64,000 nucleotides of DNA. Origin: Lytechinus pictus (Eukaryota). The translations under genes and the position numbers were made by a program. This document shows, one piece after another, positions 17,850 through 57,000 of the stretch (positions are counted from its first letter, which is position 1; each line of letters starts with the position of its first letter). The stretch spans positions 23,126,001 to 23,190,000 of the forward strand of contig NC_087259.1 in NCBI RefSeq assembly GCF_037042905.1, read 5' to 3'. The notes under the pieces were generated by a model. It saw only the letters and a list, made by a program, of their open reading frames with translations. It did no database searches and was not told the DNA's origin.

Positions 17850-19398
17850 TGATTGAATTGAATATATTACCAAATATCACTGTCAGGTACAATTACATGG
17901 AAATAGTACATCACATATAAACGAAACATTTGGTAATTGGAGCTAACATAATAGCAAGATGCTAATCGAGGTTAGCCCCAAATAATGTCATTATCATAGT
18001 TTAAACAATAATTTCAACTAAATCTCAATACTGTAAAAATTCGGTACTAATTTTACTTATAACTGTTGCAGAAAATTGCGATCAGTTTTAGTGAACATAT
18101 TTACACTATTTACAAGAAAAAATATCTTAATTATTCACAAAATCTTTATACATAATTATTTGTTTTCAGGCAGTATACCATACCAAATTAATTAAAATCT
18201 TCCAGTAGCATTATAGTTTTAACGATTTGCTAAATATCTTGCGACTGGGGTGTTTCTAATATTAATGGGCAGATGATTCCATAAAGTAGGACCAGAAAAT
18301 GAAATTGATTGTTTTCCCAAATTGGTTTTATTTTTGCCAAGATTAACATTTCGCTTTTCTCTATTTCTCGTATTGTAAGGATGGTCTATGAATGAAAAAA
18401 AATAATCAATAAAACTATGCGGCAATCGATTAATAATTGAATCGTGCATAAATACTCCTATCAAATGTTGGTATTGTTTGAAAATATCGAGATTATTTAG
18501 ATCATATAATAAAGAAGCAGAGTGAAAAGTATGATGGTTGAACGTCATTATTCTAGCTATTCTTTTTTGAAGTAATAATATAGGGTTCAGGGTTGTTTTG
18601 CACGTCCCATCCCAAACTTCCAGACCATACGTTATATGTCATGTATGTGGTAAAATAAATGAGAGTTGTATAACATAACTAAGATTCTCTTTGTTACTTA
18701 ATTCCTGAATCTATAAAGTATTCCATTTTTTTTTGCTTAGCACATTGCATACAATGTCAACCTGATCCTTCCATGTAAGTTTTTTGTCGATACATATACC
18801 AAGAAATAATATTGAATCCACACACTCTAATAAAGTTCCTTTCATTAAAACATTTTTCGTCTATTTCTAAACAACATATATTTAGTTTTCGTAACATTGA
18901 TTGTCAATTTGTTGGCATTGCACCATGCTATTATATTGTTTAGATTGAGACTACTTTCTGATAAATCAATATGTTGTTCATCACAATTGAAGGTATGAAA
19001 TAAATTTGAGTCATCCGCAAAAAGACGGAAATTGAAATAATTTGATAAGTTTGCCAGATCGTTTATATACAACAAGAACAAAGTTGGACCAAAAACTGAT
19101 CCTTGTGGAATACCGCATGAAATCGACCTGTATTCGGAATTTACACCATCATAATTAACAAATTGCTTTCTGTTTCGTAAATAATCATTAAACCATTCTA
19201 CTGCCTTACCACGAATACCATAGTGTTCTAGTTTCTTAATGAGAATAGAATGATTAATCGTATCAAAAGCTTTAGCAAAATCGATGAATATTCCTAATGT
19301 CACCTTTCCTTCATCAGTATATCGTGTAATTTGATTAATCAGATTTATCAGTGAAAGTTTCGTACTGTATCCATTTCTAAAACCATATTGGTGTTTAT
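17850..19398 (-). mobile_element. 5'-truncated, decayed CR1/L2-group LINE (RT domain + 3' UTR)
   Basis: RT motifs QYGFR, IFIDFAKAFDTINH, GIPQGSVFGPTLFLLYINDL, LFADDS and NKLTINVTKTKYM, broken by stops and frameshifts; (TTCAA)n-like tail near 17850. Confidence 0.92.
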
Positions 19399-27000: not shown

Positions 27001-30000
27001 AAATCCACTCAAGTGTGAATTGAATTCTGAAGGGGGCAGTGGAAAACAGCACAAACTGCAGCAGCAGAAAACATATCATACAAACAAGAAAACACCGCAA
27101 CTCGATCATAATCTGTTCGATCTCTTAGCTCGCTCGTTTCCACAGTCACTTGATCATTTTGTAAGGGACCTTGCCAAAACAAAATAATCACCTACATCTG
27201 GGGGCCTACATATTGTTTTTATTTTTTACGTGTGCGGTCATTGTTTTAATCTTTCCCGCGTGCGGTCATACACGCAGTAATCTTTACCCGTTACATTTAC
27301 TAACATTCTGTATAAATTCTTACACTTAGACCAAGGTGATGTCGCCGTGACGGAGAGAGCGGGAAATCTATCTCACTGGTGTTCGACCGAGCATCATCAG
27401 TTCATAGCATCCGACGCACAGTGCAATGGAGTATTTGAGTGCGCTAACTACACAGACGACGCAGAATGCTTCGGTGAGTCACGTGCACTTCACATATTGA
27501 CCAATCAAAATTGTCTGTGAAAATAGTGGCGCGTAGTAATGATAACGAACATTCATACCTTGTGCGAACGTTATGTTCGCTTATGTTCGCTTCGTTATGT
27601 GTTTGTCTTCATAAATCTATTAAATAAAAGAAGCTTAATGGTGCTCGATGACTGGGCGTTGTGGCGTGCGCCTGTCATCCAAGCTATGTGGGGGAAGTTA
27701 CAAATTGATGCAGAGGTTCGAGCCCTGGTCACGTCTTTCGGATGGTGACGCTAAAGGTCGGTCCCAGATGTAAATAATCATATCTGATTGATACACGTCT
27801 GACAAAACTCAATTACACACACACTCGATCGGTGTACCCATGACCCTCTGGTTTTGCGACCAATTGAAAAATTTATCTCCCCAAAAACGATTCTCATTGG
27901 GTTTGTTTAAACCATACTAGTATGCCTTGAAACGATTATGTTTATTGGACATTGTGGTTTTGCGATTGACCACAAAAACGTGACCCTTATTTGTTTAATC
28001 TACAGGTCGGGTACTAAACAATGTGAAAACTATTGACATTCTGAACCAAAAAAAGTTTTTCATCTGTCTTCATTCTTCTGAAAAATATGTATATTTAAAA
28101 TCATACTTGACCGTTTAAAAACAGATATAAAGTCCGAATAAATAAAAAATATCTACGTGTTTTCCGTTGTTCATATAATTTATTTATTAGATTTTGTAAC
28201 AAAACTTAAAGCTAAATTTTTAAAGGTCCATTACCATATTAACCCATTTTAATGTCGTCAGTTTCACGTTTTGTTTAAAGTCTTCTTTTATTTACTCTCT
28301 GCTCATGGTGTTCGTCCGATATCGTTAAGACCGTTCAGCAAATCGTCTCTTTAAAAGTTTAGCAAATAAATAAGCTTTTTGTTAAACTTTTTAACTTTTA
28401 ACCGATAAATTTAAACTCCCGCTTTTATAGATGAAGAGTTTGGCAGGGAATGTGGACCAGGCTTTCACCAGTGCATGACTTCACCCGAGTTGTGTGTCTC
28501 ACAAGAAAGGGTTTGCGACGGTTGGAATGACTGCCCCTTGGGAGACGACGAAGAAAATTGTGGTAAGAACTTCGATGTCATTGACTACGGTATCAACATA
28601 CGTCATCGATGACGGTTGTATTACTCTTGCATTCATGCCAATAACGGGGGTGGAGATGGAAATGTTGGAAGTGATGTGGTTAGTAATGAAGTAAATGGAG
28701 ATTAGAATGATAACGACACGAATGATGATGATGATCGATGACGATCGTGACGATGTTAGTGAAGACGATAGTAGTATAAGAACGTCTCCAGCGTCATGAC
28801 GTATATAATATTACGTAACCCTCATGAATATTAATGAGGGTCGTGAATACATAATGAGGGGTCTTGGGCGTCATGACGTCATCCGAGCCCTAGCCTTAAC
28901 CCTAGCCATAACCCTAACCGTTAGAGTACCAGCAACTGTAACCCTACCGAAACCCTAACTCTAAATGTACCAGCAACCCTAACCCTACCCCCAAACCATA
29001 ATCCATCGATGTCACTGACGTCAGTCAGTGACATATGGACGACATCGATAAGGACATCGTTGGATTGCAACAGGGAAGTGCAATGGAAGGGGTAGGAACA
29101 CGATATGACATGAAATGGGTGGGGGTATAACAATAGGATAAAATACAAGGGGAGTTCTATGACATCATACTCGATATAGTCATCCATGACATCGTTGGAT
29201 TGCGACAGGGGAGTGTAGAACGTGATGGGACATGAAATGGAGGGGTCAACAATAGGTCAAAAAACAAGGAAACCTCTATAAAGGGTGGAGGAAAACCGTC
29301 ATTCGTCATTATTGCGACGAAGAAGGAGTAACACTCAAAAACTGGGACCGTCTACATACAACATGTGTAATACAACCGCAAAACGCCGACGATACCGAAT
29401 GGTGTCAAGAATTTCAGAAACAAGTGGAAAAGGCGGACTTGCTCATGGTCATCGAATATCTGGCCATTATCGAGATTTTCAAAGACATGAACAAATATCC
29501 CAAGACATGGGTGGAAGAATTGATCAAAGAAAATCCTCAGATGAAAGTACGGCAATCGTTGGAGTGCTTGGACCCTCAAGTTGGTCAAATTTTACCCCCA
29601 CATAGCGAGAGTGATGTGGCTGAGACGAGAGCTGATGGACCCGTACCTCGTCACAGAGTATGGGTTGTCTATAGCGTCATAACTTTATTATTTGTTTTAT
29701 GAATATGAATTATGACATATGTAAATTCATAACGTGTATGAAACATGGACATGACGTCATAATTATGCATAAATTATGAATAAATTAAGATTAAAGCTAT
29801 CGTGACGTCATACCGATGATGTAGTGGTCCCAAACTTTGCTTGGTTTAGAGCCCTTGGTTGTTTGCTCTCTATATTAAGCAGCTATAGGCTTGGATTTGA
29901 TTCTCAATGTTTACCTCGTTGGGTTTCATGCGAATGCATATATGGCCAGTATCGTCGTCACTACCCATCAATGATCGATTTTCTGTATGATAGGACTAGA

Positions 30001-33000
30001 ATGGCGAAAAACAATGGGGGAAGTTGTAAAGAGTGGAGAAAAATAACAATTTATTCGTCAGTTTCGTCATTTGGTTATTTTCATAATTTTGATAATTTTG
30101 TCATTTCGTCATTATTTGTTGTTCTGTCATTTGTCAATCGGTCAATTATTCATTTTCTCGTGCTGCCATTTCGTCATTCCATCCTTTAGTGGGAATAGGG
30201 TGGGAAAGGGGAGGATCGATCGGCAAGGGAGGAGCCCTGAGGGACAAGTATCCATCTTTTCATCATTGTACAATTCGTCATTTTCATGCCATCGTTTTTT
30301 ATTTTTTCTCTCGTTTTGTCATTTTGATAATTCGGCCATTCGGTAATTATTCTACCATTTGTCGATCGTTCATTAATTTATTTCTCGTTCAGCCATTCGG
30401 TTATTTCGCCGATTTATCATTTTCTTCCTTACGTTATACGCTGTTCTGCTTTTTAACAGTTTCCTAAAGAAATTGTTCATTGAAAATCAAGAAACATATG
30501 CATCACTTTTTTTCTACTTTGTTTAATCTGTCTATCATCATTGTACAATTCGTCATTTTAATGTCATCCTGTTTGTGTTATTTCCATGCCATCGTTTTTA
30601 TTTTTTCTCTCGTTTTGTCATTTTGATAATTGTCGATCAGTCAATTGTTCATTTTCTCCTTCTGTCATTCGGTCATTTCGTGGTTTTGTCATTTTCTTCC
30701 TTACGTTACGTCGTTGTTTCGTTACTAATAGTTTCCAAAAGAAATGGTTTCATTGGATATCAAGAAAGATATAAGAGAACAAACAAAATAGATGGTCATC
30801 GTGCGTATACACAATGATTGTTCATCTTCTACTCCCTCCTATACTTGTCAGATGATTCATAACAATTATTATAATGTTATATTATTGGGAGAAATATATC
30901 CCCCACCCCGCGATTGACACCCATGTCAACGATTCAACCAAAACAATATTGCTGCCTAAGTTCTTATACCCCCGAAACCTTCATTAATTATGGTCATGAC
31001 ACCATTTCCTCATTATTTCATTTTATCATTTAGTCATTTGGGCATTGTTATTTAATTCAATTTTTATTCCGTCCTTCAATTCTCTCATCATTTGACCACT
31101 TTCACCATTTTTGTTTTCATTTCCTCATATCACCAGTCATCCGTTATTAGTTAATCGGTCAATTTATCCTATGGTCATTCCGTAATCATGGTAATTTCGA
31201 TAATAACTCGTGTCGTTTCGTCATATTTCGATGTCACTGTTTTCCCATCTTCTCCTTTCATAATTTTGTCACACTCATATTTTTCTTTCCGTAATTTCGC
31301 AATCACATATTGTAAATTATTCCTATTGCCAATCGGAATTCTGGTTGTTCTCGTCATTTTTTTATAATTCTGTCGTTCAAATCGGCGTCAACGGCGTTTA
31401 GTAATTGCCGCTCCTTGAGTCGGCAACGGCGTTATGCACTTCAGTATTGCAACGTTGTAATGTTACTTGCATGCGACATCATGGTCAAAATTGCAAACAC
31501 TACAAAAAGAACAGATTCAGCCATTTCTTTTCATTTTGCGAGCTAGGAGCCATCAAGTCAACAGGATGAATAACCTCGATATATCAAAACGCTATGGCTG
31601 TTCACTATGCCATAGAACGTATAGTCGTAAATATGACATGAAAAGGCATCAACAAAATGCACACCCTGAAATGGAAAATGGTTATGATTATGCTGAAAAT
31701 GAATACGAGGATGAAGATTCCAAAAACGAGGACAGTCATAGTGATGACGGGGGAGTAGAAACGAGTCATTCAGAAAGAGATGATGATACAGAGGACGACG
31801 AATCTTCTAATTCAGAGACACCTGACATGGGCTGCGTTTATGCGACCTCAAGCCAGAATCATGATTTGAATCATGATTTGAATCATGATTCAAAACACAA
31901 ACATGAATCACGATGTCACAGAATCAGCGTTTAGACGACCTTCATTACAATGCTGTTTCTCCTCAGATTCGGGCCAATCCAGTGCGCATCACTAGTGCGC
32001 AGTTTGACAGAGGAAGTTTTTCGCACGTGTTTCGGCTCTCGAAAAATCTTTTGCTTCCAGAATTCAGTCTATACCTAATTTTGTTTACTTCTATAGGGTC
32101 CATATGCTTCTATTCATCTTGTTAGTTTATCCAAAATGGTGTTCGGAAGTGAATTTCAGCGTAGATCCAATTTAATATTAACACTCTATACTCAACAACA
32201 ACTGAGATCATTGTCTGTCCAGTTAATTCATTCACTAGAACTTGAAGTTGAAGACATGACCAAAAAATGAAAAGTAGTGGACGATGCGATGACCAACACA
32301 GAACTTGAACATGACAAGAAATGCATGCAGAGTAACCATGTACATACAGTGAGCATATAGAGAGCCTTGAGCTTGGCAAGAGTCAAACCGAAAGTAGCCC
32401 GACACAGTGAGGTCATATAATCATGATTCAAATCACGATATCGTTTATTCGAACATTTTCATACGTGATTCTGTAGAAACGTCTTTCCAAACGCCCCTTT
32501 TTTCGTAGTTCATGTTTGTGATTCTAATCATGATTATATTCAATTTCGACTAAACGCAATCGTGATTCTGCAGAATCGTGATTTGAATCATGATTCAGAT
32601 CATGATTCTAGGGTGAAAAAGTGGCGGATAAACGCACCCATGGACGACCCAGCAGACAACCTAGCTTATCAAGAATGGTACGCAGAGGCGATGGCAGCTA
32701 CCGAGCAATTGAGGAATGAAAAGCACGACAAATACATCTCTAATGGAATGAGTGATGAAGAAGCCAAAGAAAAGGCTCATGTGAAAGTTCTGTGGGCCGT
32801 CAAACGGATCTTTTTCGACCGCTATTCTAATTTTTTGCGACAAACTTTGTACCTCGAAGAGGACGACACGAATCAGGAAATAATTTCTGATCTCTCGGAA
32901 AAAGTAGAAAGTGGCATGAACGTTCGAAAAGCAGTACAACGAGTCTTAGCAAGACAAGGAACCAAGTTCGATGGATTATTCCGATATCAAGCTGAAGAGG

Positions 33001-36000
33001 ATGATGATGATAATGATGATGATGAGATGGAAGGAACCGAAGAAATTCATAACTAAAATACTGCATTGATTGATTTAGTACGGAATCTATATATTGAGTC
33101 CGTTCTTAGGGTGGAAAGAAATAATGCATATTCATTAAATCAACTGACACGAGTCTAAAACCCTTTAAAAATACCATTCTATATGTGATTACCCTGTGTT
33201 CTGTGTAATAAAAATAAATTAGAATAAGTTTATCCCAGATTTCTGTTTTTTTAGTGTGTGTGGGTTGTATGTGTTTCATAATTTCTTCATAATATTTGGC
33301 CAGCTTTACACATGGTGCTTTACCATAATAAAGAAACTTATATGGGATATCCTATATAGAGAGACAAATAATATACGTAGCAATTCATTATTAAACCATG
33401 TCTAGATGGAGTGGAAGGAAATACGATTTTGCAAATGATGACTGGTGATATGAGGAAATAAAAACAAAAATAGTGAAAGTGGTAAAATGATGAGAGGATT
33501 GAAGGACGGAATAAAAATTGAATTAAATAACAATGCCCAAATGACTAAATGATAAAATGAAATAATGAGGAAATGGTGTCATGACCATAATTAATGAAGG
33601 TTTCGGGGGTATAAGAACTTAGGCAGCAACATTGTTTTGGTTGAATCGTTGACATGGGTGTCAATCGCGGGGTGGGGGATATATTTCTCCCAATAATATA
33701 AAATTATAATAATTGTTATGAATCATCTGACAAGTATAGGAGGGAGTAGAAGATGAACAATCATTGTGTATACGCACGATGACCATCTATTTTGTTTGTT
33801 CTCTTATATCTTTCTTGATATCCAATGAAACCATTTCTTTTGGAAACTGTTAGTAACGAAACAACGACGTAACGTAAGGAAGAAAATGACAAAACCACGA
33901 AATGACCGAATGACAGAAGGAGAAAATGAACAATTGACTGATCGACAATTATCAAAATGACAAAACGAGAGAAAAAATAAAAACGATGGCATGGAAATAA
34001 CACAAACAGGATGACATTAAAATGACGAATTGTACAATGATGATAGACAGATTAAACAAAGTAGAAAAAAATGATGCATATGTTTCTTGATTTTCAATGA
34101 ACAATTTCTTTAGGAAACTGTTAAAAAGCAGAACAGCGTACAACGTAAGGAAGAAAATGATAAATCGGCGAAATAACCGAATGGCTGAACGAGAAATAAA
34201 TTAATGAACGATCGACAAATGGTAGAATAATTACCGAATGGCCGAATTATCAAAATGACAAAACGAGAGAGAAAAAAAAAACGATGGCATGAAAATGACG
34301 AATTGTACAATGATGAAAAGATGGATACTTGTCCCTCAGGGCTCCTCCCTTGTCGATCGTTCCTCCCCTTTCCCACCCTATTCCCACTAAAGGATGGAAT
34401 GACGAAATGGCAGCACGAGAAAATGAATAATTGACCGATTGACAAATGACAGAACAACAAATAATGACGAAATGACAAAATTATCAAAATTATGAAAATA
34501 ACCAAATGACGAAACTGACGAATAAATTGTTATTTTTCTCCGCTCTTTACAACTTCCCCCATTGTTTTTCGCCATACTAGTCCTATCATACAGAAAATCG
34601 ATCATTGATGGCTAGTGACGACGATACTGGCCATATATGCATTCGCATGAAACCCAACGAGGTAAACATTGAGAATCAAATCCAAGCCTATAGCTGCTTA
34701 ATATAGAGAGCAAACAACCAAGGGCTCTAAACCAAGCAAAGTTTGGGACCACTACATCATCGGTATGACGTCACGATAGCTTTAATCTTAATTTATTCAT
34801 AATTTATGCATAATTATGACGTCATGTCCATGTTTCATACACGTTATGAATTTACATATGTCATAATTCATATTCATAAAACAAATAATAAAGTTATGAC
34901 GCTATAGACAACCCATACTCTGTGACGAGGTACGGGTCCATCAGCTCTCGTCTCAGCCACATCACTCTCGCTACGTGGGGGTAAAATTTGACCAACTTCT
35001 GAGGGTCCAAGCACTCCAACGATTGCCGTACTTTCATCTGAGGATTTTCTTTGATCAATTCTTCCACCCATGTCTTGGGATATTTGTTCATGTCTTTGAA
35101 AATCTCGATAATGGCCAGATATTCGATGACCATGAGCAAGTCCGCCTTTTCCACTTGTTTCTGAAATTCTTGACACCATTCGGTATCGTCGGCGTTTTGC
35201 GGTTGTATTACACATGTTGTATGTAGACGGTCCCAGTTTTTGAGTGTTACTCCTTCTTCGTCACAATAATGACGAATGACGGTTTTCCTCCACCCTTTAT
35301 AGAGGTTTCCTTGTTTTTTGACCTATTGTTGACCCCTCCATTTCATGTCCCATCACGTTCTACACTCCCCTGTCGCAATCCAACGATGTCATGGATGACC
35401 AGAGCTGCCAACCACACTTGACCAAAAATCCTATTATTTCACCCCAAAAATCCTATTTTTAGGCAAAAAATCCTATTCATACCCGTCGTGTACTTTCCTA
35501 CTATACATCTCATTATTTTGTTGTGCTCACTGTAATTTTTACATCCGACAGGCAAGGTTCCACATTAACTTTTTTGGTGGTGGCCCGTTTGGTGGTTTTG
35601 GTGGTGGCCCGTTCGGGCCACCAAAACCTTCAAATTATTTTTGTTGGTGGCCCAATATTAAAGTTTGGTGGCCCCACCAAAACAGAACAGGAAAAAAAGT
35701 AAAAAAGTAAAAAAGAAAAATTAAAGAAAAAAAAAGAAACAAAAGACAATTTAAAAAAAATTAATAAAACAAATAAATAAAAATGGTGAAGGGGGAAAAA
35801 ATGAGAAGCCATTACAAATATTTTTTAACAGCTGTACGTAGCAACAGTTTAAGCCAATTGAGCAAATAATTTTCACTCACCTTTTGGGGATGACGCATTT
35901 CTGTTTTTATAACCTTAATTTCGTTTGTATTATTATTTTTTTAGTAGAAACATATTCTTTAATCAGGCATATTCAATGGGAAGGGGTATATGGTTTAACC

Positions 36001-39000
36001 ACTGTCAAAAAAAAAAAAAAAAAATAAGAAAACTGTAAAAGTTATATCTGGAAAAAAGGTGAGAAAAGTCCTTTACTTTGTTTGCCAAAATGTTTGAAAA
36101 ATTCACATTTCATATCAATGAAATGCCTTCCCAAAGTATTTTCTTTATGAAGAGTGATTTAAGAAGTCATTTATAAACAAAAAAGAAAGAAACTGTCTGC
36201 TTATTTTTTGCTAGAAAAGACGCAGCTTCGAAAGAAACCAAGTATCAACATACATACAAATGCACATGTGGGACTGTGATGTACTCACCTGTGTTTTTAT
36301 GTGTATTAACACATTTGGAAATCGGTCTTTTTGAGTCAAAAGAGAGGTCATAATTCCTGTTTTTAATGCTTGCAGATAATCAGTTTACACCAGATTTGAG
36401 TAATCTGGACTGTAGAAGGGCATGTCATTGGTGTAAAATGTGACTTTGACATAGATTTTCAAAGTTCTGTGGAAGATTTCTTAGCAGCAACATTTCGTAT
36501 CGTAGCTCCCCGAATCTGAATAGGCCGCTAGCGCTAGCGCACAGATATAGCTACATGTACGTAGCTGCTGTGGTTTCATGCAAAGCTCACGCCAGCCGGC
36601 CGGCAGGATAATAGCTACTGTATGCTATAGCGGTAAGGCTATGTACTGTCATGTGTGTGTGTATTTGTGTGTAGATCAACAAAAAGGGCGCATGATGATT
36701 TGGTTGCAATTTGAACTGTATAAAGTTGATAAATGCGTGAAAAATCGGAGGAAAAATTGCGCTACTTTGAAAATTATTGGTTGCCCGATTCGGGCCACCA
36801 AAACTTAACATTTTTCATTAATGATTGCCCGAGGTGTATTTCTGTAATGTCGAGCCTTGCCATAGCTATATTTTCAAAAAATCGTATTTTATCTATAAAA
36901 ATCCTAGTGTCGTATTTCAAGTGAAAAATCGTACGGAATACGACAAAATCGTACTATTTGGCAGCTCTGGATGACTATATCGAGTATGATGTCATAGAAC
37001 TCCCCTTGTATTTTATCCTATTGTTATACCCCCACCAATTTCATGTCATATCGTGTTCCTACCCCTTCCATTGTACTTCCCTGTTGCAATTCAACGATGT
37101 CCTTATCGATGTCGTCCATATGTCACTGACTGACGTCAGTGACATCGATGGATTATGGTTTGGGGTAGGGTTAGGGTTGCTGGTACATTTAGAGTTAGGG
37201 TTTCGGGTAGGGTTACAGTTGCTGGTACTCTAACGGTTAGGGTTATGGCTAGGGTTAAGGCTAGGGCTCGGATGACGTCATGACGCCCAAGACACCCTCA
37301 TTATGTATTCACGACCCTCATTAATATTCATGAGGGTTACGTAATATTACGTCATAACGCTGGAGACGTTCTTATACTACTGACGATGACGATGATGAGA
37401 ATGATGATCATGAGGATGTTGGTGGTGATGGTGATTGTAGTGATGATAATGATGGAGATGTTGATGATAATGACGGTGGTGGTGATGATGACCCTTGTAA
37501 AAAAGTACTGCGATTACCGCGGTACTACTGCGGTACTACCACAGTACTACTGCGGTACAATTGAAGTACTTGTAGTACCGCGGTACTACCGCGGTACTAC
37601 CGTGGTACTTATGCAGTAGTACCGCAGTACAATTGAAGTACTTGTAGAACCGTGGTACTATCGTGGTACTACCGTGGTACTTATGCAGTAGTACCGCAGT
37701 ACAATTGAAGTACTTGTAGAACCGTGGTACTATCGTGGTACTACCGTGGTACTTCCGTGGTACTTATGCAGTAGTACCGCAGTACAATTGAAGTACTTGT
37801 AGAACCGTGGTACTATCGTGGTACTACCGTGGTACTCTTGCAATAGTACCGCGGTACAATTGAAGTACTTGTAGAACCGTGGTACTATCGTGGTACTACC
37901 GTGGTACTACCGTGGTACTCCTAATCACTAAATATGGCTCAGAATATGCTTATTATCTGTATCAACATCCATTTTTACTAAATAAACTGGTTTTTAACAT
38001 TACAAATTGTGATAGCCAACAAATTCCTCATGTATTTCTTGGTTTTTAATTTCTTATGTATTTGTTTGATATTATATTTTTTTTGTTTTTCTTTTTATGG
38101 AAAAAATATTGAACATTATTCAACAACTTTTAGCCCCAAATCAAATGATTGCAGTGATGAAAAAGAAAAATAATGAGGGTTTTGACTATTCTTTGAAAAA
38201 AAAAACAATTCCCACAGGATTTGTACACAAATTTATATAGGCTAATTAATCTTTACATGCAATATGGACATTGAACAGTAAAATCATGCGATGTAATATG
38301 TACGCGATTGTTTGACAATCGTGATCACCTGAAGGACGCATGCGCGTATCTCGAAAAATCACGTGACGCGCGTGCACCTTTTTTATTGGATCGTAGAAAG
38401 GCGCGCGCGATCGTCTATTTTTCATTCAAGATCCACGTACGTGCAGTCGCCGCTGGCTAACGTCAGCTTAATGGACGACGCCATATTGCCAGATTCAGGC
38501 AGATTTGGCCCGCGCCCTCTCCGGCTAAAGCTCGAACGCCATTCACCCATACACTAATTCCCCTTGATTACCGTTGTTAAAAACCTCTGTCATATCTTTT
38601 CCAGCATTTTTATGAATTAGCGATTTATGTTTTTCCGTTTATCAGATATCCTTCATTATACACATATTTTTTTCATATTTATAACATTTTTATTTTAATC
38701 ACAATTTTAGTCCAAACGCGGGTCAGTTTTTGTTAACCCACGTTGTTTGTGCATGCCCACGTATAGCCTTACGCGTATTGAAAGGAATGATGTTGGGTCG
38801 AAAAACAGAATTGTTATTGTTTGTTCCTTGTTTGTTGGGGATGAAACTATGATGGCGACCAGTCACGTTTGACTGTACCGCCAAATAGTTAAGATTAATT
38901 AATTAAGGTCAAGGTGAGATAAGAGAAATGAGCAAGGGGCATTGTGGTGGGGGAGGGGGAGAGGGAGAGGGGGGGGGGGGGGGGTTACGAGGGCCGAGTG

Positions 39001-54000: not shown

Positions 54001-57000
54001 CTACATATATGATTCATTTATTTATTTATGATTCATTATTTTAAATAATCATATTTTACTTCTATTTACTTACCTTGTCAAAGATTTTCTTTGCTCTTCA
54101 TTACCTATAATATATATTTATGTTCAGTTTAATTCTCCACTCAATTCAATCTTTATTTGGAAATAAAGATTGAATTGACTGTATTATTCGTGTTAATTAT
54201 ATATTCAAAAAGCTGCATCACTTCGCCGTGATCCCTCGCATAGGCCTATAAAGTTGATTCTATCCTTTGGGTTTATGTCAGGTTTCTATAGCTTCTGACC
54301 ATACGAGCATTGAAAGTTAAGGGGTTTATGGGACGAATTATCGACTAGGGCCGTCCATAGCTCAGTCGGTAGAGCACCGGGCTAGCAATCCGGAGGTCTC
54401 GGGTTCGAATCCCGATGGAACCCCATTTTCTTTGCTCTTTATTACCTATAATATATATTTATGGTCAGTTTAATTCTCCGCTCAATTCAATCTTTATTTG
54501 GAAATAAAGATTGAATTGACTGTATTATTCGTGTTACTTGTCAAAGATTGGAAGGAACTTGATTGATGTATGTTTTTGTTCCAACTTGGATACAAGTACG
54601 TGTTTTACAACTCAACAGTTCTTGAAAATTTTATAGACTTTATATGAAGCGTAATCTCAACTTGCCTTTACCATAAACATTGTGCTCGAACCTAAAACTC
54701 GTTAGTCATAGTAGTTATAAAAAAGTACTAAAGTAGAGATGTTAGATATCTACATGTTTTTGTTGCAACTCAGTAGAGATGTTTTTAACTACAGTTTTGA
54801 GATATTATTGATAGATTATCTGCTGCAATTTCTACATATATGATGCATGTGTTTAGTTTTAATGGTTTTAAATAATCGTGTTTTACTTCTATTTACTTAC
54901 CTTGTCAAAGATTGGAAGATTTATGTTTTTGTTGCAACTTTGATACAAGTACGTGGACAGTGTTTTACAACTCAACAGTTCTTGGAAATTGTATAGACTT
55001 TTTATATGAAGCGTAATCTCAACTTGCCTTCACCACAAACATTGTGCGTGAACCTAAAACTCGTTAGTCATAGTTGTTATAAAAGTACTAAAGTAGAGAT
55101 GTTAGATATCTTTGTTTTTGTTGCAACTCGAGTACAGATGATTTTCACTACAGTTTTTATCATGTAAAATATTAAGCATATAACTTTAACTTGCCTTTAC
55201 TTCAACCAACCATTCAGCCATTGTGTGTGCTAAAACTTCAGGAATCCCGTTACCTCAACCAACCATTTAGCCATTGTGTGTGCCAAAACTTAGTCATGTT
55301 AGTAAGAAAGTACATGATTACAGATGTTAAAACATATATATATATATATATATATATACATATCTCAAAATAAACTTTTTATAATATTAATACTTTTGTA
55401 ATTTTCTTATTACTGTGATTAAGCTAAATGAAATTGTGATCGTTTTCATAAAGGTGTGCAAGTACCGCAGTAGCACCAGGGTAGTACCATGGTACAGGTA
55501 CCACGGTACTATCGCAGTACAGGTTTACAGGTACAGCGGTACTACTGCGGTAGTACCGCAGTATAGGTACCGCGGTACTACCGCAGTACAGGTACCGCGG
55601 TACTACCGCAGTACAGGTACCGCGGTACTACCGCAGTACCTGTACTGCGGTACTACCGCAGTATAGGTACCGCGGTACTACCGCAGTACAGGTACCGCGG
55701 TACTACCGCAGTACCTGTACTGCGGTACTACCGCAGTATAGGTACCGCGGTACTACTGCAGTACTACTGCGGTACTACCGCAGTATAGGTACCGCGGTAC
55801 TACCGCAGTACAGGTACTGCGGTACTACCGCAGTACCTGTACTGCGGTACTACTGCAGTACTACCGCAGTATAGGTACCGCGGTACTGTACTGCGGTACT
55901 ACCGCGGTACTACCGCAGTAGTACCGACCAATTTACCACGAGTACTACCGCAGTACTTGTACTGCGGTAGTACTGCGGTACTTGTACCGCAGTACTACCG
56001 CAGTACTTTTTTACAAGGGGATGATGATGACGGTCGAGGTGATGGTGGTGATGATGATACTGGTGATAATTATGATCATTATAATGATGGTGAACTGAGG
56101 ACTAAGATTCGGCAAGAATTATGGAATGCTGCCGCTATAAAGATAAAATGATGAAATTGTAGTTGTATGATGATTATGACGATGATGAAGACGATGACGA
56201 CGGGTGATAAAATATTTCTCATAATCCTTCATAATCCATAATCGAACTCACAGAAACTGTGATGTGCCCGTTGGATTGTTCGTGTGGTGAGTCTGCGTTT
56301 TTCGGGAGATATGGTCCTGATCAACCCCAGTGCAGCGATCCCAACTGGCTCCCGTTCTGGGTAAATTGTTCGAGCGGATGGAACGAAGAATACAGAAACA
56401 ATACTGCTCCCAAAGCGATTATGTTGTAAGTTATTGTCAAACTATTATGTGTTGTTTCGTTTCCCTGGAAATTGAAAAAAATGTCAGTTTCATAATTCAC
56501 ATGTCAAATATATGGCAGAAATAATGTCTTATTAAACATAAGTTTATTGATTAGGTCGTTTTGCTCGCTCACCCAAAATAACCTACTGCAACGTTTAAAA
56601 ACGAACAAGGACCCTCTTGATTAATGCCAATATATGTTCTTATCAATCATCATGAAAATCAATCTTTTCAGATGCACCTTGTGACTTAAGGAATAAAAAA
56701 ATATAAGTGATGGAAATCATATTCCTACTGGAAAAAAGGATCCACTTCTTACATTTGACAGAAATTGTAATTCTAGAGCTCTTTAATACTTTATCAAGTA
56801 GCTTGTACGCCAAATAGATATTACATGAGAAACAAGGACTCGCAATCAATTAATTTGATGTGCATATATTTCGAGGAGGGTTAAAAAATATAGAATAACG
56901 TTTGTTTATTAACGTCATGTTTTAGACATATGATTTCTTAGCCAGAGGGCGTGTCTCTACGTTTTCCCCCTCAGAAATCTGAACCATGCACCGATCAGAG

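Follow-up and report, generated by a model that had tools for sequence, protein, structure and literature searches.

A probably Polinton-derived element with long inverted arms and a single gene in the sea urchin Lytechinus pictus

We analyzed a 64,000-nucleotide (nt) stretch of the Lytechinus pictus genome (contig NC_087259.1, positions 23,126,001 to 23,190,000; hereafter the window). At 28770–37381 it contains an element made up of two long inverted arms around a unique core. The left arm (28770–31141, plus strand, 2,372 nt) and the right arm (33437–37381, minus strand) are mutual reverse complements, and the core between them (31142–33436, ~2.3 kb) holds a single gene on the plus strand (31566–33056), hereafter the small gene.

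Arms, ends and target site

The two arms were aligned in two separate pieces, and the pieces of the gene were likewise compared apart. Over 2,384 nt of arm-versus-arm alignment there are 20 mismatches and seven gap openings, with 97.4% identity over the outer ~417 nt and 99.0% over the inner 1,965 nt. The arm–core junctions are sharp, and no obvious homology spans them. Two insertions of unrelated transposons interrupt the element: one of ~1.57 kb in the right arm, hAT-like, with CAGAG-type ends and an 8-bp target-site duplication (TSD), and one of ~0.8 kb in the gene, revealed by an uninterrupted relative on contig L002 (83%–87% DNA identity). The gene is interrupted once, and both of its pieces are free of stops and frameshifts. 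Because one transposon breaks the gene and another the right arm, this copy is dead: 28770–37381 is an inactivated copy whose gene was disabled by a single insertion. Subtracting the nested insertions from the lengths leaves an original element of ~6.2 kb, about three quarters of it arms. A preliminary description of this DNA had reported the near-identical arms, the two insertions, the original size and the share taken by the arms, and all four agree with these measurements. Within the 64-kb window the element is single-copy; a Lytechinus relative on contig L001 has its own TSD, and its arms cannot be aligned to those in the window.

Inverted duplications occur as a long-read artefact, and the structure might therefore have come from a fold-back chimeric read in the assembly or, alternatively, from a segmental duplication that by chance arose in inverted form on both sides of a host gene. 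We regard such an origin as barely conceivable, since there are 27 differences between the arms, the nested transposon with its 8-bp TSD is present in just one of them, and the core is unique. The ends are also sharp and bordered by a flanking duplication, and related elements in Lytechinus (L001) and Pinctada (L007), described below, share the same design.

The element starts AGTAGTATAAGAACG... and has the complement of this sequence at its other end, the tips reading AGTAGT...ACTACT. The terminal 10-mer, AGTAGTATAA, consists of two AGT units followed by ATAA, and is found at 28770–28779 (plus strand) and again at 37372–37381 (minus strand). Short terminal reiterations serve slide-back initiation in protein-primed replication, and Polinton ends, as Kapitonov and Jurka are said to have described in 2006, read 5'-AG...CT-3'; the ends here are of the same Polinton/Maverick type. 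Directly outside both ends stands the 6-mer GACGAT (28764–28769 and 37382–37387). Rereading the sequence confirmed the termini and the flanking 6-mers at the places where they had first been reported.

Polintons have 6-bp TSDs and long terminal inverted repeats (TIRs) (PMC3014272, PMC10045372), and the GACGAT on both sides of the element has the length of a Polinton/Maverick TSD. However, the insertion target (28699–28769 and 37382–37491) is rich in GAT and GAC with a 3-nt periodicity (~36 units on the right according to Tandem Repeats Finder, TRF), and the 71 nt on the left contain GACGAT itself three times, the 110 nt on the right two times. Because the target is GAY-rich, 3-nt periodic and of low complexity, two 6-mers drawn from these flanks would agree ~1% of the time given the local composition, as against 0.02%. 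The duplication fits a TSD, yet by itself it is weak evidence. It gains weight only because relatives of the element in Lytechinus and Pinctada are flanked by clean 6-bp duplications (GTAGTA and TTTGCT, respectively). The earlier claim that it demonstrates a genuine integrase-mediated insertion thus stands as regards the length, which fits Polintons, and not as proof.

A 6-bp TSD would also suit a non-autonomous member of another superfamily with this TSD length, IS3EU/GingerRoot (usually 6 bp; PMC10045372) or Dada. TA..TA termini are invariable in complete IS3EU families (PMC10045372), and IS3EU/GingerRoot is excluded because the window element ends in AG..CT. No transposase of either kind lies near any member of the gene family that we examined, and the termini and the gene both indicate Polintons. 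Membership in either superfamily is thus very improbable.

The arms are otherwise complex sequence in which TRF finds small tandem arrays only. Degenerate telomere-like CCCTAA/AACCCTA repeats lie ~115–225 nt from each end (28885–28995, plus strand, mirrored at ~37155–37266), with the G-rich strand running 5' to 3' toward each terminus, which is the polarity of real chromosome ends; AACCCTA occurs six times per arm versus 0.11 expected. Short motifs in a fixed orientation, together with longer repeats, occupy the zone at 29298–31038 (plus strand), all of which is mirrored in the right arm. GTCATT has 15 occurrences, every one on the same strand (~11-fold background), TCGTCATT occurs six times versus 0.02 expected, and repeat units of ~270–300 nt are present in two to three copies each. 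TGACGTCA occurs four times per arm, at 28874 and 29016 nearer the terminus and at 29752 and 29803 in the motif zone, and eight of the 11 sites in the window fall inside the arms. We consider the oriented motifs of 29298–31038 candidate protein-binding arrays. The GTCATT, TGACGTCA and CCCTAA arrays are absent from the Lytechinus and Pinctada TIRs, and for this reason the idea that they are a family-wide signature was dropped; we keep them as a lineage-specific feature. Comparison of the arm DNA with the Lytechinus locus and 87 other loci detected conservation confined to the coding region. The left arm has no protein-family match by Pfam or tblastn, and since the open reading frames (ORFs) of the arms match nothing in Pfam, we treated the arms as noncoding.

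Very long inverted arms with internal repeats also bring to mind foldback-type transposons such as TU of Strongylocentrotus and FB of Drosophila, in which case the element would not be a Polinton, would depend on some other transposase, and would carry its gene as captured cargo. The arms of TU and FB are largely short tandem repeats, whereas those in the window are mostly complex sequence, and the TSDs of TU and FB are 8–9 bp, versus 6 bp here. The termini of the window element match those of a Polinton over 10 nt, and the supposed cargo is itself derived from a Polinton gene, as discussed below. Foldback elements are known from sea urchins (reported by Liebermann 1983, as cited in PMC4079207), and we nonetheless judge this origin improbable.

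Other features of the window lie outside the element. An array with 72/155-nt units, composed of 11-nt TACCGCGGTAC-like repeats, adjoins it at 37515–37919, and a related array (66%–77% identity) is found 18 kb off at 55460–56010. The only Rfam or ARAGORN match in the window is a tRNA-Ala (AGC) at 54352–54425. An ORF fragment at 18845–19303 (minus strand) matches RVT_1 (E 8.7e-22) and is the remnant of an unrelated retroelement.

The single gene and its family

The window lacks the genes expected of a full Polinton. No pPolB was found in the 64 kb by tblastn with pieces of the Pinctada pPolB, and no rve integrase by tblastn with the Pinctada and Mytilus integrases. Remnants of Polinton proteins were likewise undetected by tblastn in the arms and in the rest of the window. 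Apart from the gene pieces, the element contains no ORF of 150 or more amino acids. Of a morphogenetic module there is just the derivative of an ATPase gene, without its P-loop domain, and no other coding capacity was found. These surveys uphold the earlier remark that pPolB, integrase, protease and capsid genes are not visible here, and it is because these genes are absent that the element is considered non-autonomous.

In the product of the small gene, a C2H2 finger at the N terminus is joined by an acidic, disordered linker to a conserved C-terminal domain of ~115 residues. The Pfam match to the finger is weak in the window copy; zf-C2H2 is recognized in 15 of 17 relatives, and a profile of the family matches the finger in PDB at 1.6e-8. 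The C-terminal domain is modeled by AlphaFold as six helices (predicted local distance difference test score, pLDDT, >90). For this domain, structure searches of PDB and BFVD gave no significant match, either with the AlphaFold2 model of P0009, a homologue from L. pictus, or with a model of the window C-terminal piece, and a profile search of the gene family against PDB and Pfam detects the C2H2 finger only. In view of this lack of a family or fold match, no function can be assigned to the helical domain by likeness.

Relatives of the gene are 190–253 amino acids long; a word-indexed search returned 21, and an exhaustive profile search returned at least 48 clusters at E<1e-30. The small gene has its own start codon, and its architecture is common to at least 48 clusters. 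The only named relative is L. pictus LOC135157287, the closest named homologue having 64% amino-acid identity, and exact look-ups of the window ORFs in the sequence collection gave no match. The ratio of nonsynonymous to synonymous substitution (dN/dS) is 0.23–0.33 among three intact genes and 0.10–0.18 between the window C-terminal piece and each of the three. For the N-terminal piece it is 0.17 versus the gene on L003 and 0.76 versus that on L002, the latter comparison covering only 52 codons. Judged by these ratios (0.10–0.33), the small genes are a diversified echinoid family under purifying selection.

Seven contigs carrying homologues of the small gene were examined, the seventh being the 1.3-kb contig L002. 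In all six with gene tables (6/6), no polymerase, integrase or capsid gene stands beside the small gene. A palindromic region lies upstream of the gene on two contigs (L002:1-315 and L003:1-410), and a 46-nt remnant of it is present upstream of the window gene at 31372–31417. The palindromic region may be a regulatory element of the gene family.

Related elements and the ATPase connection

Longer proteins (P0129, P0158 and P0115) also emerged from the exhaustive search; they unite a P-loop ATPase of Pox_A32/Adeno_IVa2 type, a finger and the C-terminal domain of the small family. Aligned with hhalign, residues 257–417 of P0158 match the urchin family with a probability of 98.7% (E 3.6e-16), and tblastn places the Mytilus ATPase on window positions 32574–32981 at E 1.8e-13. 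In addition, the L. pictus small protein matches 12 ATPase-bearing loci. The ATPase family has at least 539 members, mostly from bivalves. The window gene has no P-loop domain and keeps the finger and the C-terminal domain, and it is thus a homologue of the finger/C-terminal module of these ATPases. The ATPases have two fingers, and in six of six comparisons the finger of the small family scores higher against the N-terminal C2H2 finger than against the internal C2HC finger. On account of this resemblance the small gene looks like a shortened ATPase gene, and the comparisons are suggestive of an ATPase gene that has lost the P-loop domain and the internal finger. The preliminary description was right to place one gene in the core; the gene appears, however, to be no anonymous cargo but an ATPase-gene derivative without the P-loop.

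A metagenome contig offers a separate observation on such genes. At L038:289-3025, a gene encoding finger, ATPase, finger and C-terminal domain is followed by a near-duplicate of its own 3' part. This partial tandem duplicate is a free-standing ORF of 296 amino acids that contains the internal finger along with the C-terminal domain, and it reads as a natural intermediate toward, or a second natural route to, a free-standing finger-plus-domain gene.

The ATPase genes keep Polinton company. In Mytilus (L006) an rve/chromo integrase gene directly follows the ATPase gene, and in Pinctada imbricata (L007) the ATPase lies between a polymerase gene and a gene for an integrase with rve and chromo domains. 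The sole gene of the window element is therefore homologous to an ATPase that stands beside pPolB and integrase, as would be expected of internal sequence derived from an autonomous element, and this arrangement is suggestive of its descent from a Polinton packaging-type ATPase gene.

The Pinctada element (L007:2966-13643) spans 10,678 bp and has TIRs of ~0.52 kb that are 97% identical, ends AGTAGTATAAAAGT... and a clean 6-bp TSD, TTTGCT. Its first 10 nt, AGTAGTATAA, are the same as those of the window element, and in both sequences this 10-mer occurs at the two termini only. A Polinton is defined by pPolB plus integrase (PMC5499653); judged by its gene content, the Pinctada element is a Polinton because it has both. 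Its polymerase has more than 5,000 relatives, typically of ~1,200 amino acids, with matches to PF03175 (DNA_pol_B_2) at E 1e-11 to 1e-15. The polymerase itself bears two N-terminal C2H2 fingers and an endonuclease-VII-like domain. In this copy the polymerase and integrase reading frames are each split once, and ~2.1 kb between the left TIR and the polymerase gene is ORF-free. The Polinton affinity first proposed for the window element is borne out by the identity of its 10-nt termini with those of an element that has pPolB, integrase and a 6-bp TSD.

Searches for further elements of this kind came back empty. A metagenome scan with the ATPase alignment covered 80 loci and yielded no further complete element. 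Occurrences of AGTAGTATAA in L008, L020, L076 and L077 were considered as element termini and rejected, as they are internal or microsatellite matches. In IMG/VR the terminal 16- to 17-mers have chance matches only, inside large phage contigs.

Within Lytechinus, the small gene is also held by the L001 element already mentioned (L001:3884-12561). It has ends AGAGAA...TTCTCT, TIRs of 0.5–0.7 kb with 54-nt repeats, and a clean TSD, GTAGTA, in non-repetitive flanks. It also carries a nested ORF for a LINE-type (long interspersed nuclear element) endonuclease/reverse transcriptase. A second L. pictus copy of the gene, with its own inverted arms, lies 7.7 kb from the first (L001:14719-20673), and the two share 89% identity over 1.7 kb.

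The relatives bear directly on a further possibility, namely that the window element is a one-off wreck: a full Polinton that, once inserted here, lost its interior, while host repair overwrote one of its ends with an inverted copy of the other. The structure would then never have moved as a 6-kb unit. A single copy is visible, and its arms are four to five times as long as the TIRs of the Pinctada (~0.52 kb) and Lytechinus (0.5–0.7 kb) elements. The ORF-free ~2.1 kb between left TIR and pPolB in Pinctada is moreover near the size of an arm. The small gene is no random stump, having its own start codon, an architecture found in at least 48 clusters at E<1e-30, and dN/dS of 0.10–0.33. In Lytechinus the small gene is housed by a compact AG...CT element that lacks Polinton genes and is flanked by a 6-bp TSD. 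A rearrangement that rebuilt one terminus is also unlikely to have spared the TSD, though the TSD is weak evidence here. On balance this origin seems unlikely.

Interpretation and comparison with known systems

Taken together, the ends, the gene and the relatives indicate that 28770–37381 is probably an inactivated non-autonomous element descended from a Polinton/Maverick and not a Polinton proper. Because its gene belongs to a diversified echinoid family that appears to be under purifying selection, the family points to an established lineage of small elements and not to a one-off defective copy. Of the earlier suggestion of a satellite or defective form, the non-autonomous status is retained, as the enzymes are absent; mobilization by a helper would be a further proposal.

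Several observations weigh against this interpretation. The analysis covers one copy of the element and no autonomous partner, and family status, typical arm length and the identity of any helper are accordingly presumptive. The only full element with matching ends comes from another phylum and matches over only 10 nt, and the Lytechinus relative starts AGAGAA, not AGTAGT. In the Pinctada element no capsid or protease ORFs were seen, and the label "packaging" rests on Pfam ATPase matches whose scores barely pass: P0158 and the Mytilus protein reach 27.7–28.3 bits against a cut-off of 22.8 bits, and P0129, at 20.8 bits, falls under it. To these must be added the low-complexity target site, the motif arrays not shared with the relatives, and the C-terminal domain, for which a DNA-binding role is a conjecture given a domain that matches no fold or family.

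How such an element might have moved can be proposed in steps of decreasing confidence. An autonomous Polinton of the same genome, able to recognize the shared ends, would have supplied the rve-type integrase for insertion. The protein-primed polymerase of a helper would likewise be required if the element replicated at all. The finger-plus-helical-domain protein would be the DNA-recognition part of the ATPase, and it probably binds the oriented motifs of the arms, where it might either recruit the helper machinery or compete for it. Finally, the 2.4-kb arms may have arisen when one end was copied onto the other, whether through copy-back or panhandle-type repair while a linear form replicated or through a fold-back repair event of the host.

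Going further, it is possible, if doubtful, that sea urchins harbor satellite-like mini-Polintons that have shed their enzymes and kept the end-recognition module of the ATPase (finger plus helical domain), combined with kilobase-sized arms rich in oriented binding motifs and telomere-like repeats. They would persist by hijacking, or interfering with, the machinery with which resident autonomous Polintons replicate, package and integrate. We would likewise only tentatively call these the animal counterpart of transpovirons or of defective-interfering genomes, equipped with a selected gene of their own.

Repeat libraries hold non-autonomous Polinton entries, and the literature that we searched contains almost nothing on non-autonomous Polinton derivatives. 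In it we found no description of a mini-element that keeps a selected, ATPase-derived finger-plus-domain gene, nor of 2.4-kb arms with telomere-like repeats. Polintons lie at the boundary between transposons and viruses, and the present element suggests that their non-autonomous derivatives can be more than deletion debris, with a fragment of a virion-type ATPase selectively kept as a free-standing protein between arms of exceptional length. Confirmation of the family in the source genome would offer a handle on the parts that Polintons require in cis and on the module that recognizes them (10-nt ends, motif arrays and finger-plus-domain protein). It would also add a parasite-of-a-parasite layer to animal Polinton biology and draw attention to a widespread, unannotated C-terminal domain of the Polinton ATPases of bivalves, cnidarians and echinoderms.

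Among known systems, the Polintons/Mavericks (Orthopolintovirales, represented here by Pinctada L007) share with the window element AG...CT ends that are identical over the initial 10 nt (AGTAGTATAA), as well as TIRs and a TSD of 6 bp, and in its finger and C-terminal module the L007 ATPase has a homologue of the window gene product. What sets the window element apart is the lack of pPolB, integrase, protease and capsid genes and of the ATPase domain itself. It is ~6 kb long versus 10–20 kb, and its arms are 2.4 kb versus 0.5 kb, making up three quarters of its length.

Defective adenovirus genomes are characterized by a long inverted duplication of one end around a short unique center. They resemble the window element in belonging to a lineage of protein-primed linear replicons and in having one end duplicated in inverted form around a unique center. 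They are, however, transient in infected cells, whereas the window element, known here from its sequence, is chromosomal and has a TSD and a gene of a selected family. The foldback transposons (TU, FB and Tetris; PMC4079207) likewise consist mainly of inverted arms that are kilobases long and contain internal repeats, and TU too comes from a sea urchin; the window arms are not short tandem repeats, and TSD length, termini and gene all indicate Polintons instead.

Transpovirons are ~7-kb linear, TIR-bounded, plasmid-like elements thought to have been derived from Polinton-like viruses by gene loss (PMC5499653). Like the window element, they are small, bounded by TIRs and poor in genes, they go back to an ancestor of Polinton class minus its morphogenetic module, and they are able to integrate; they depend on another replicon, as the window element probably would. 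Unlike it, they keep a fusion of helicase and inactivated polymerase and associate with giant viruses of protists, whereas the window element appears to keep only an ATPase-derived, putatively DNA-recognizing module and resides, with a TSD, in an animal chromosome.

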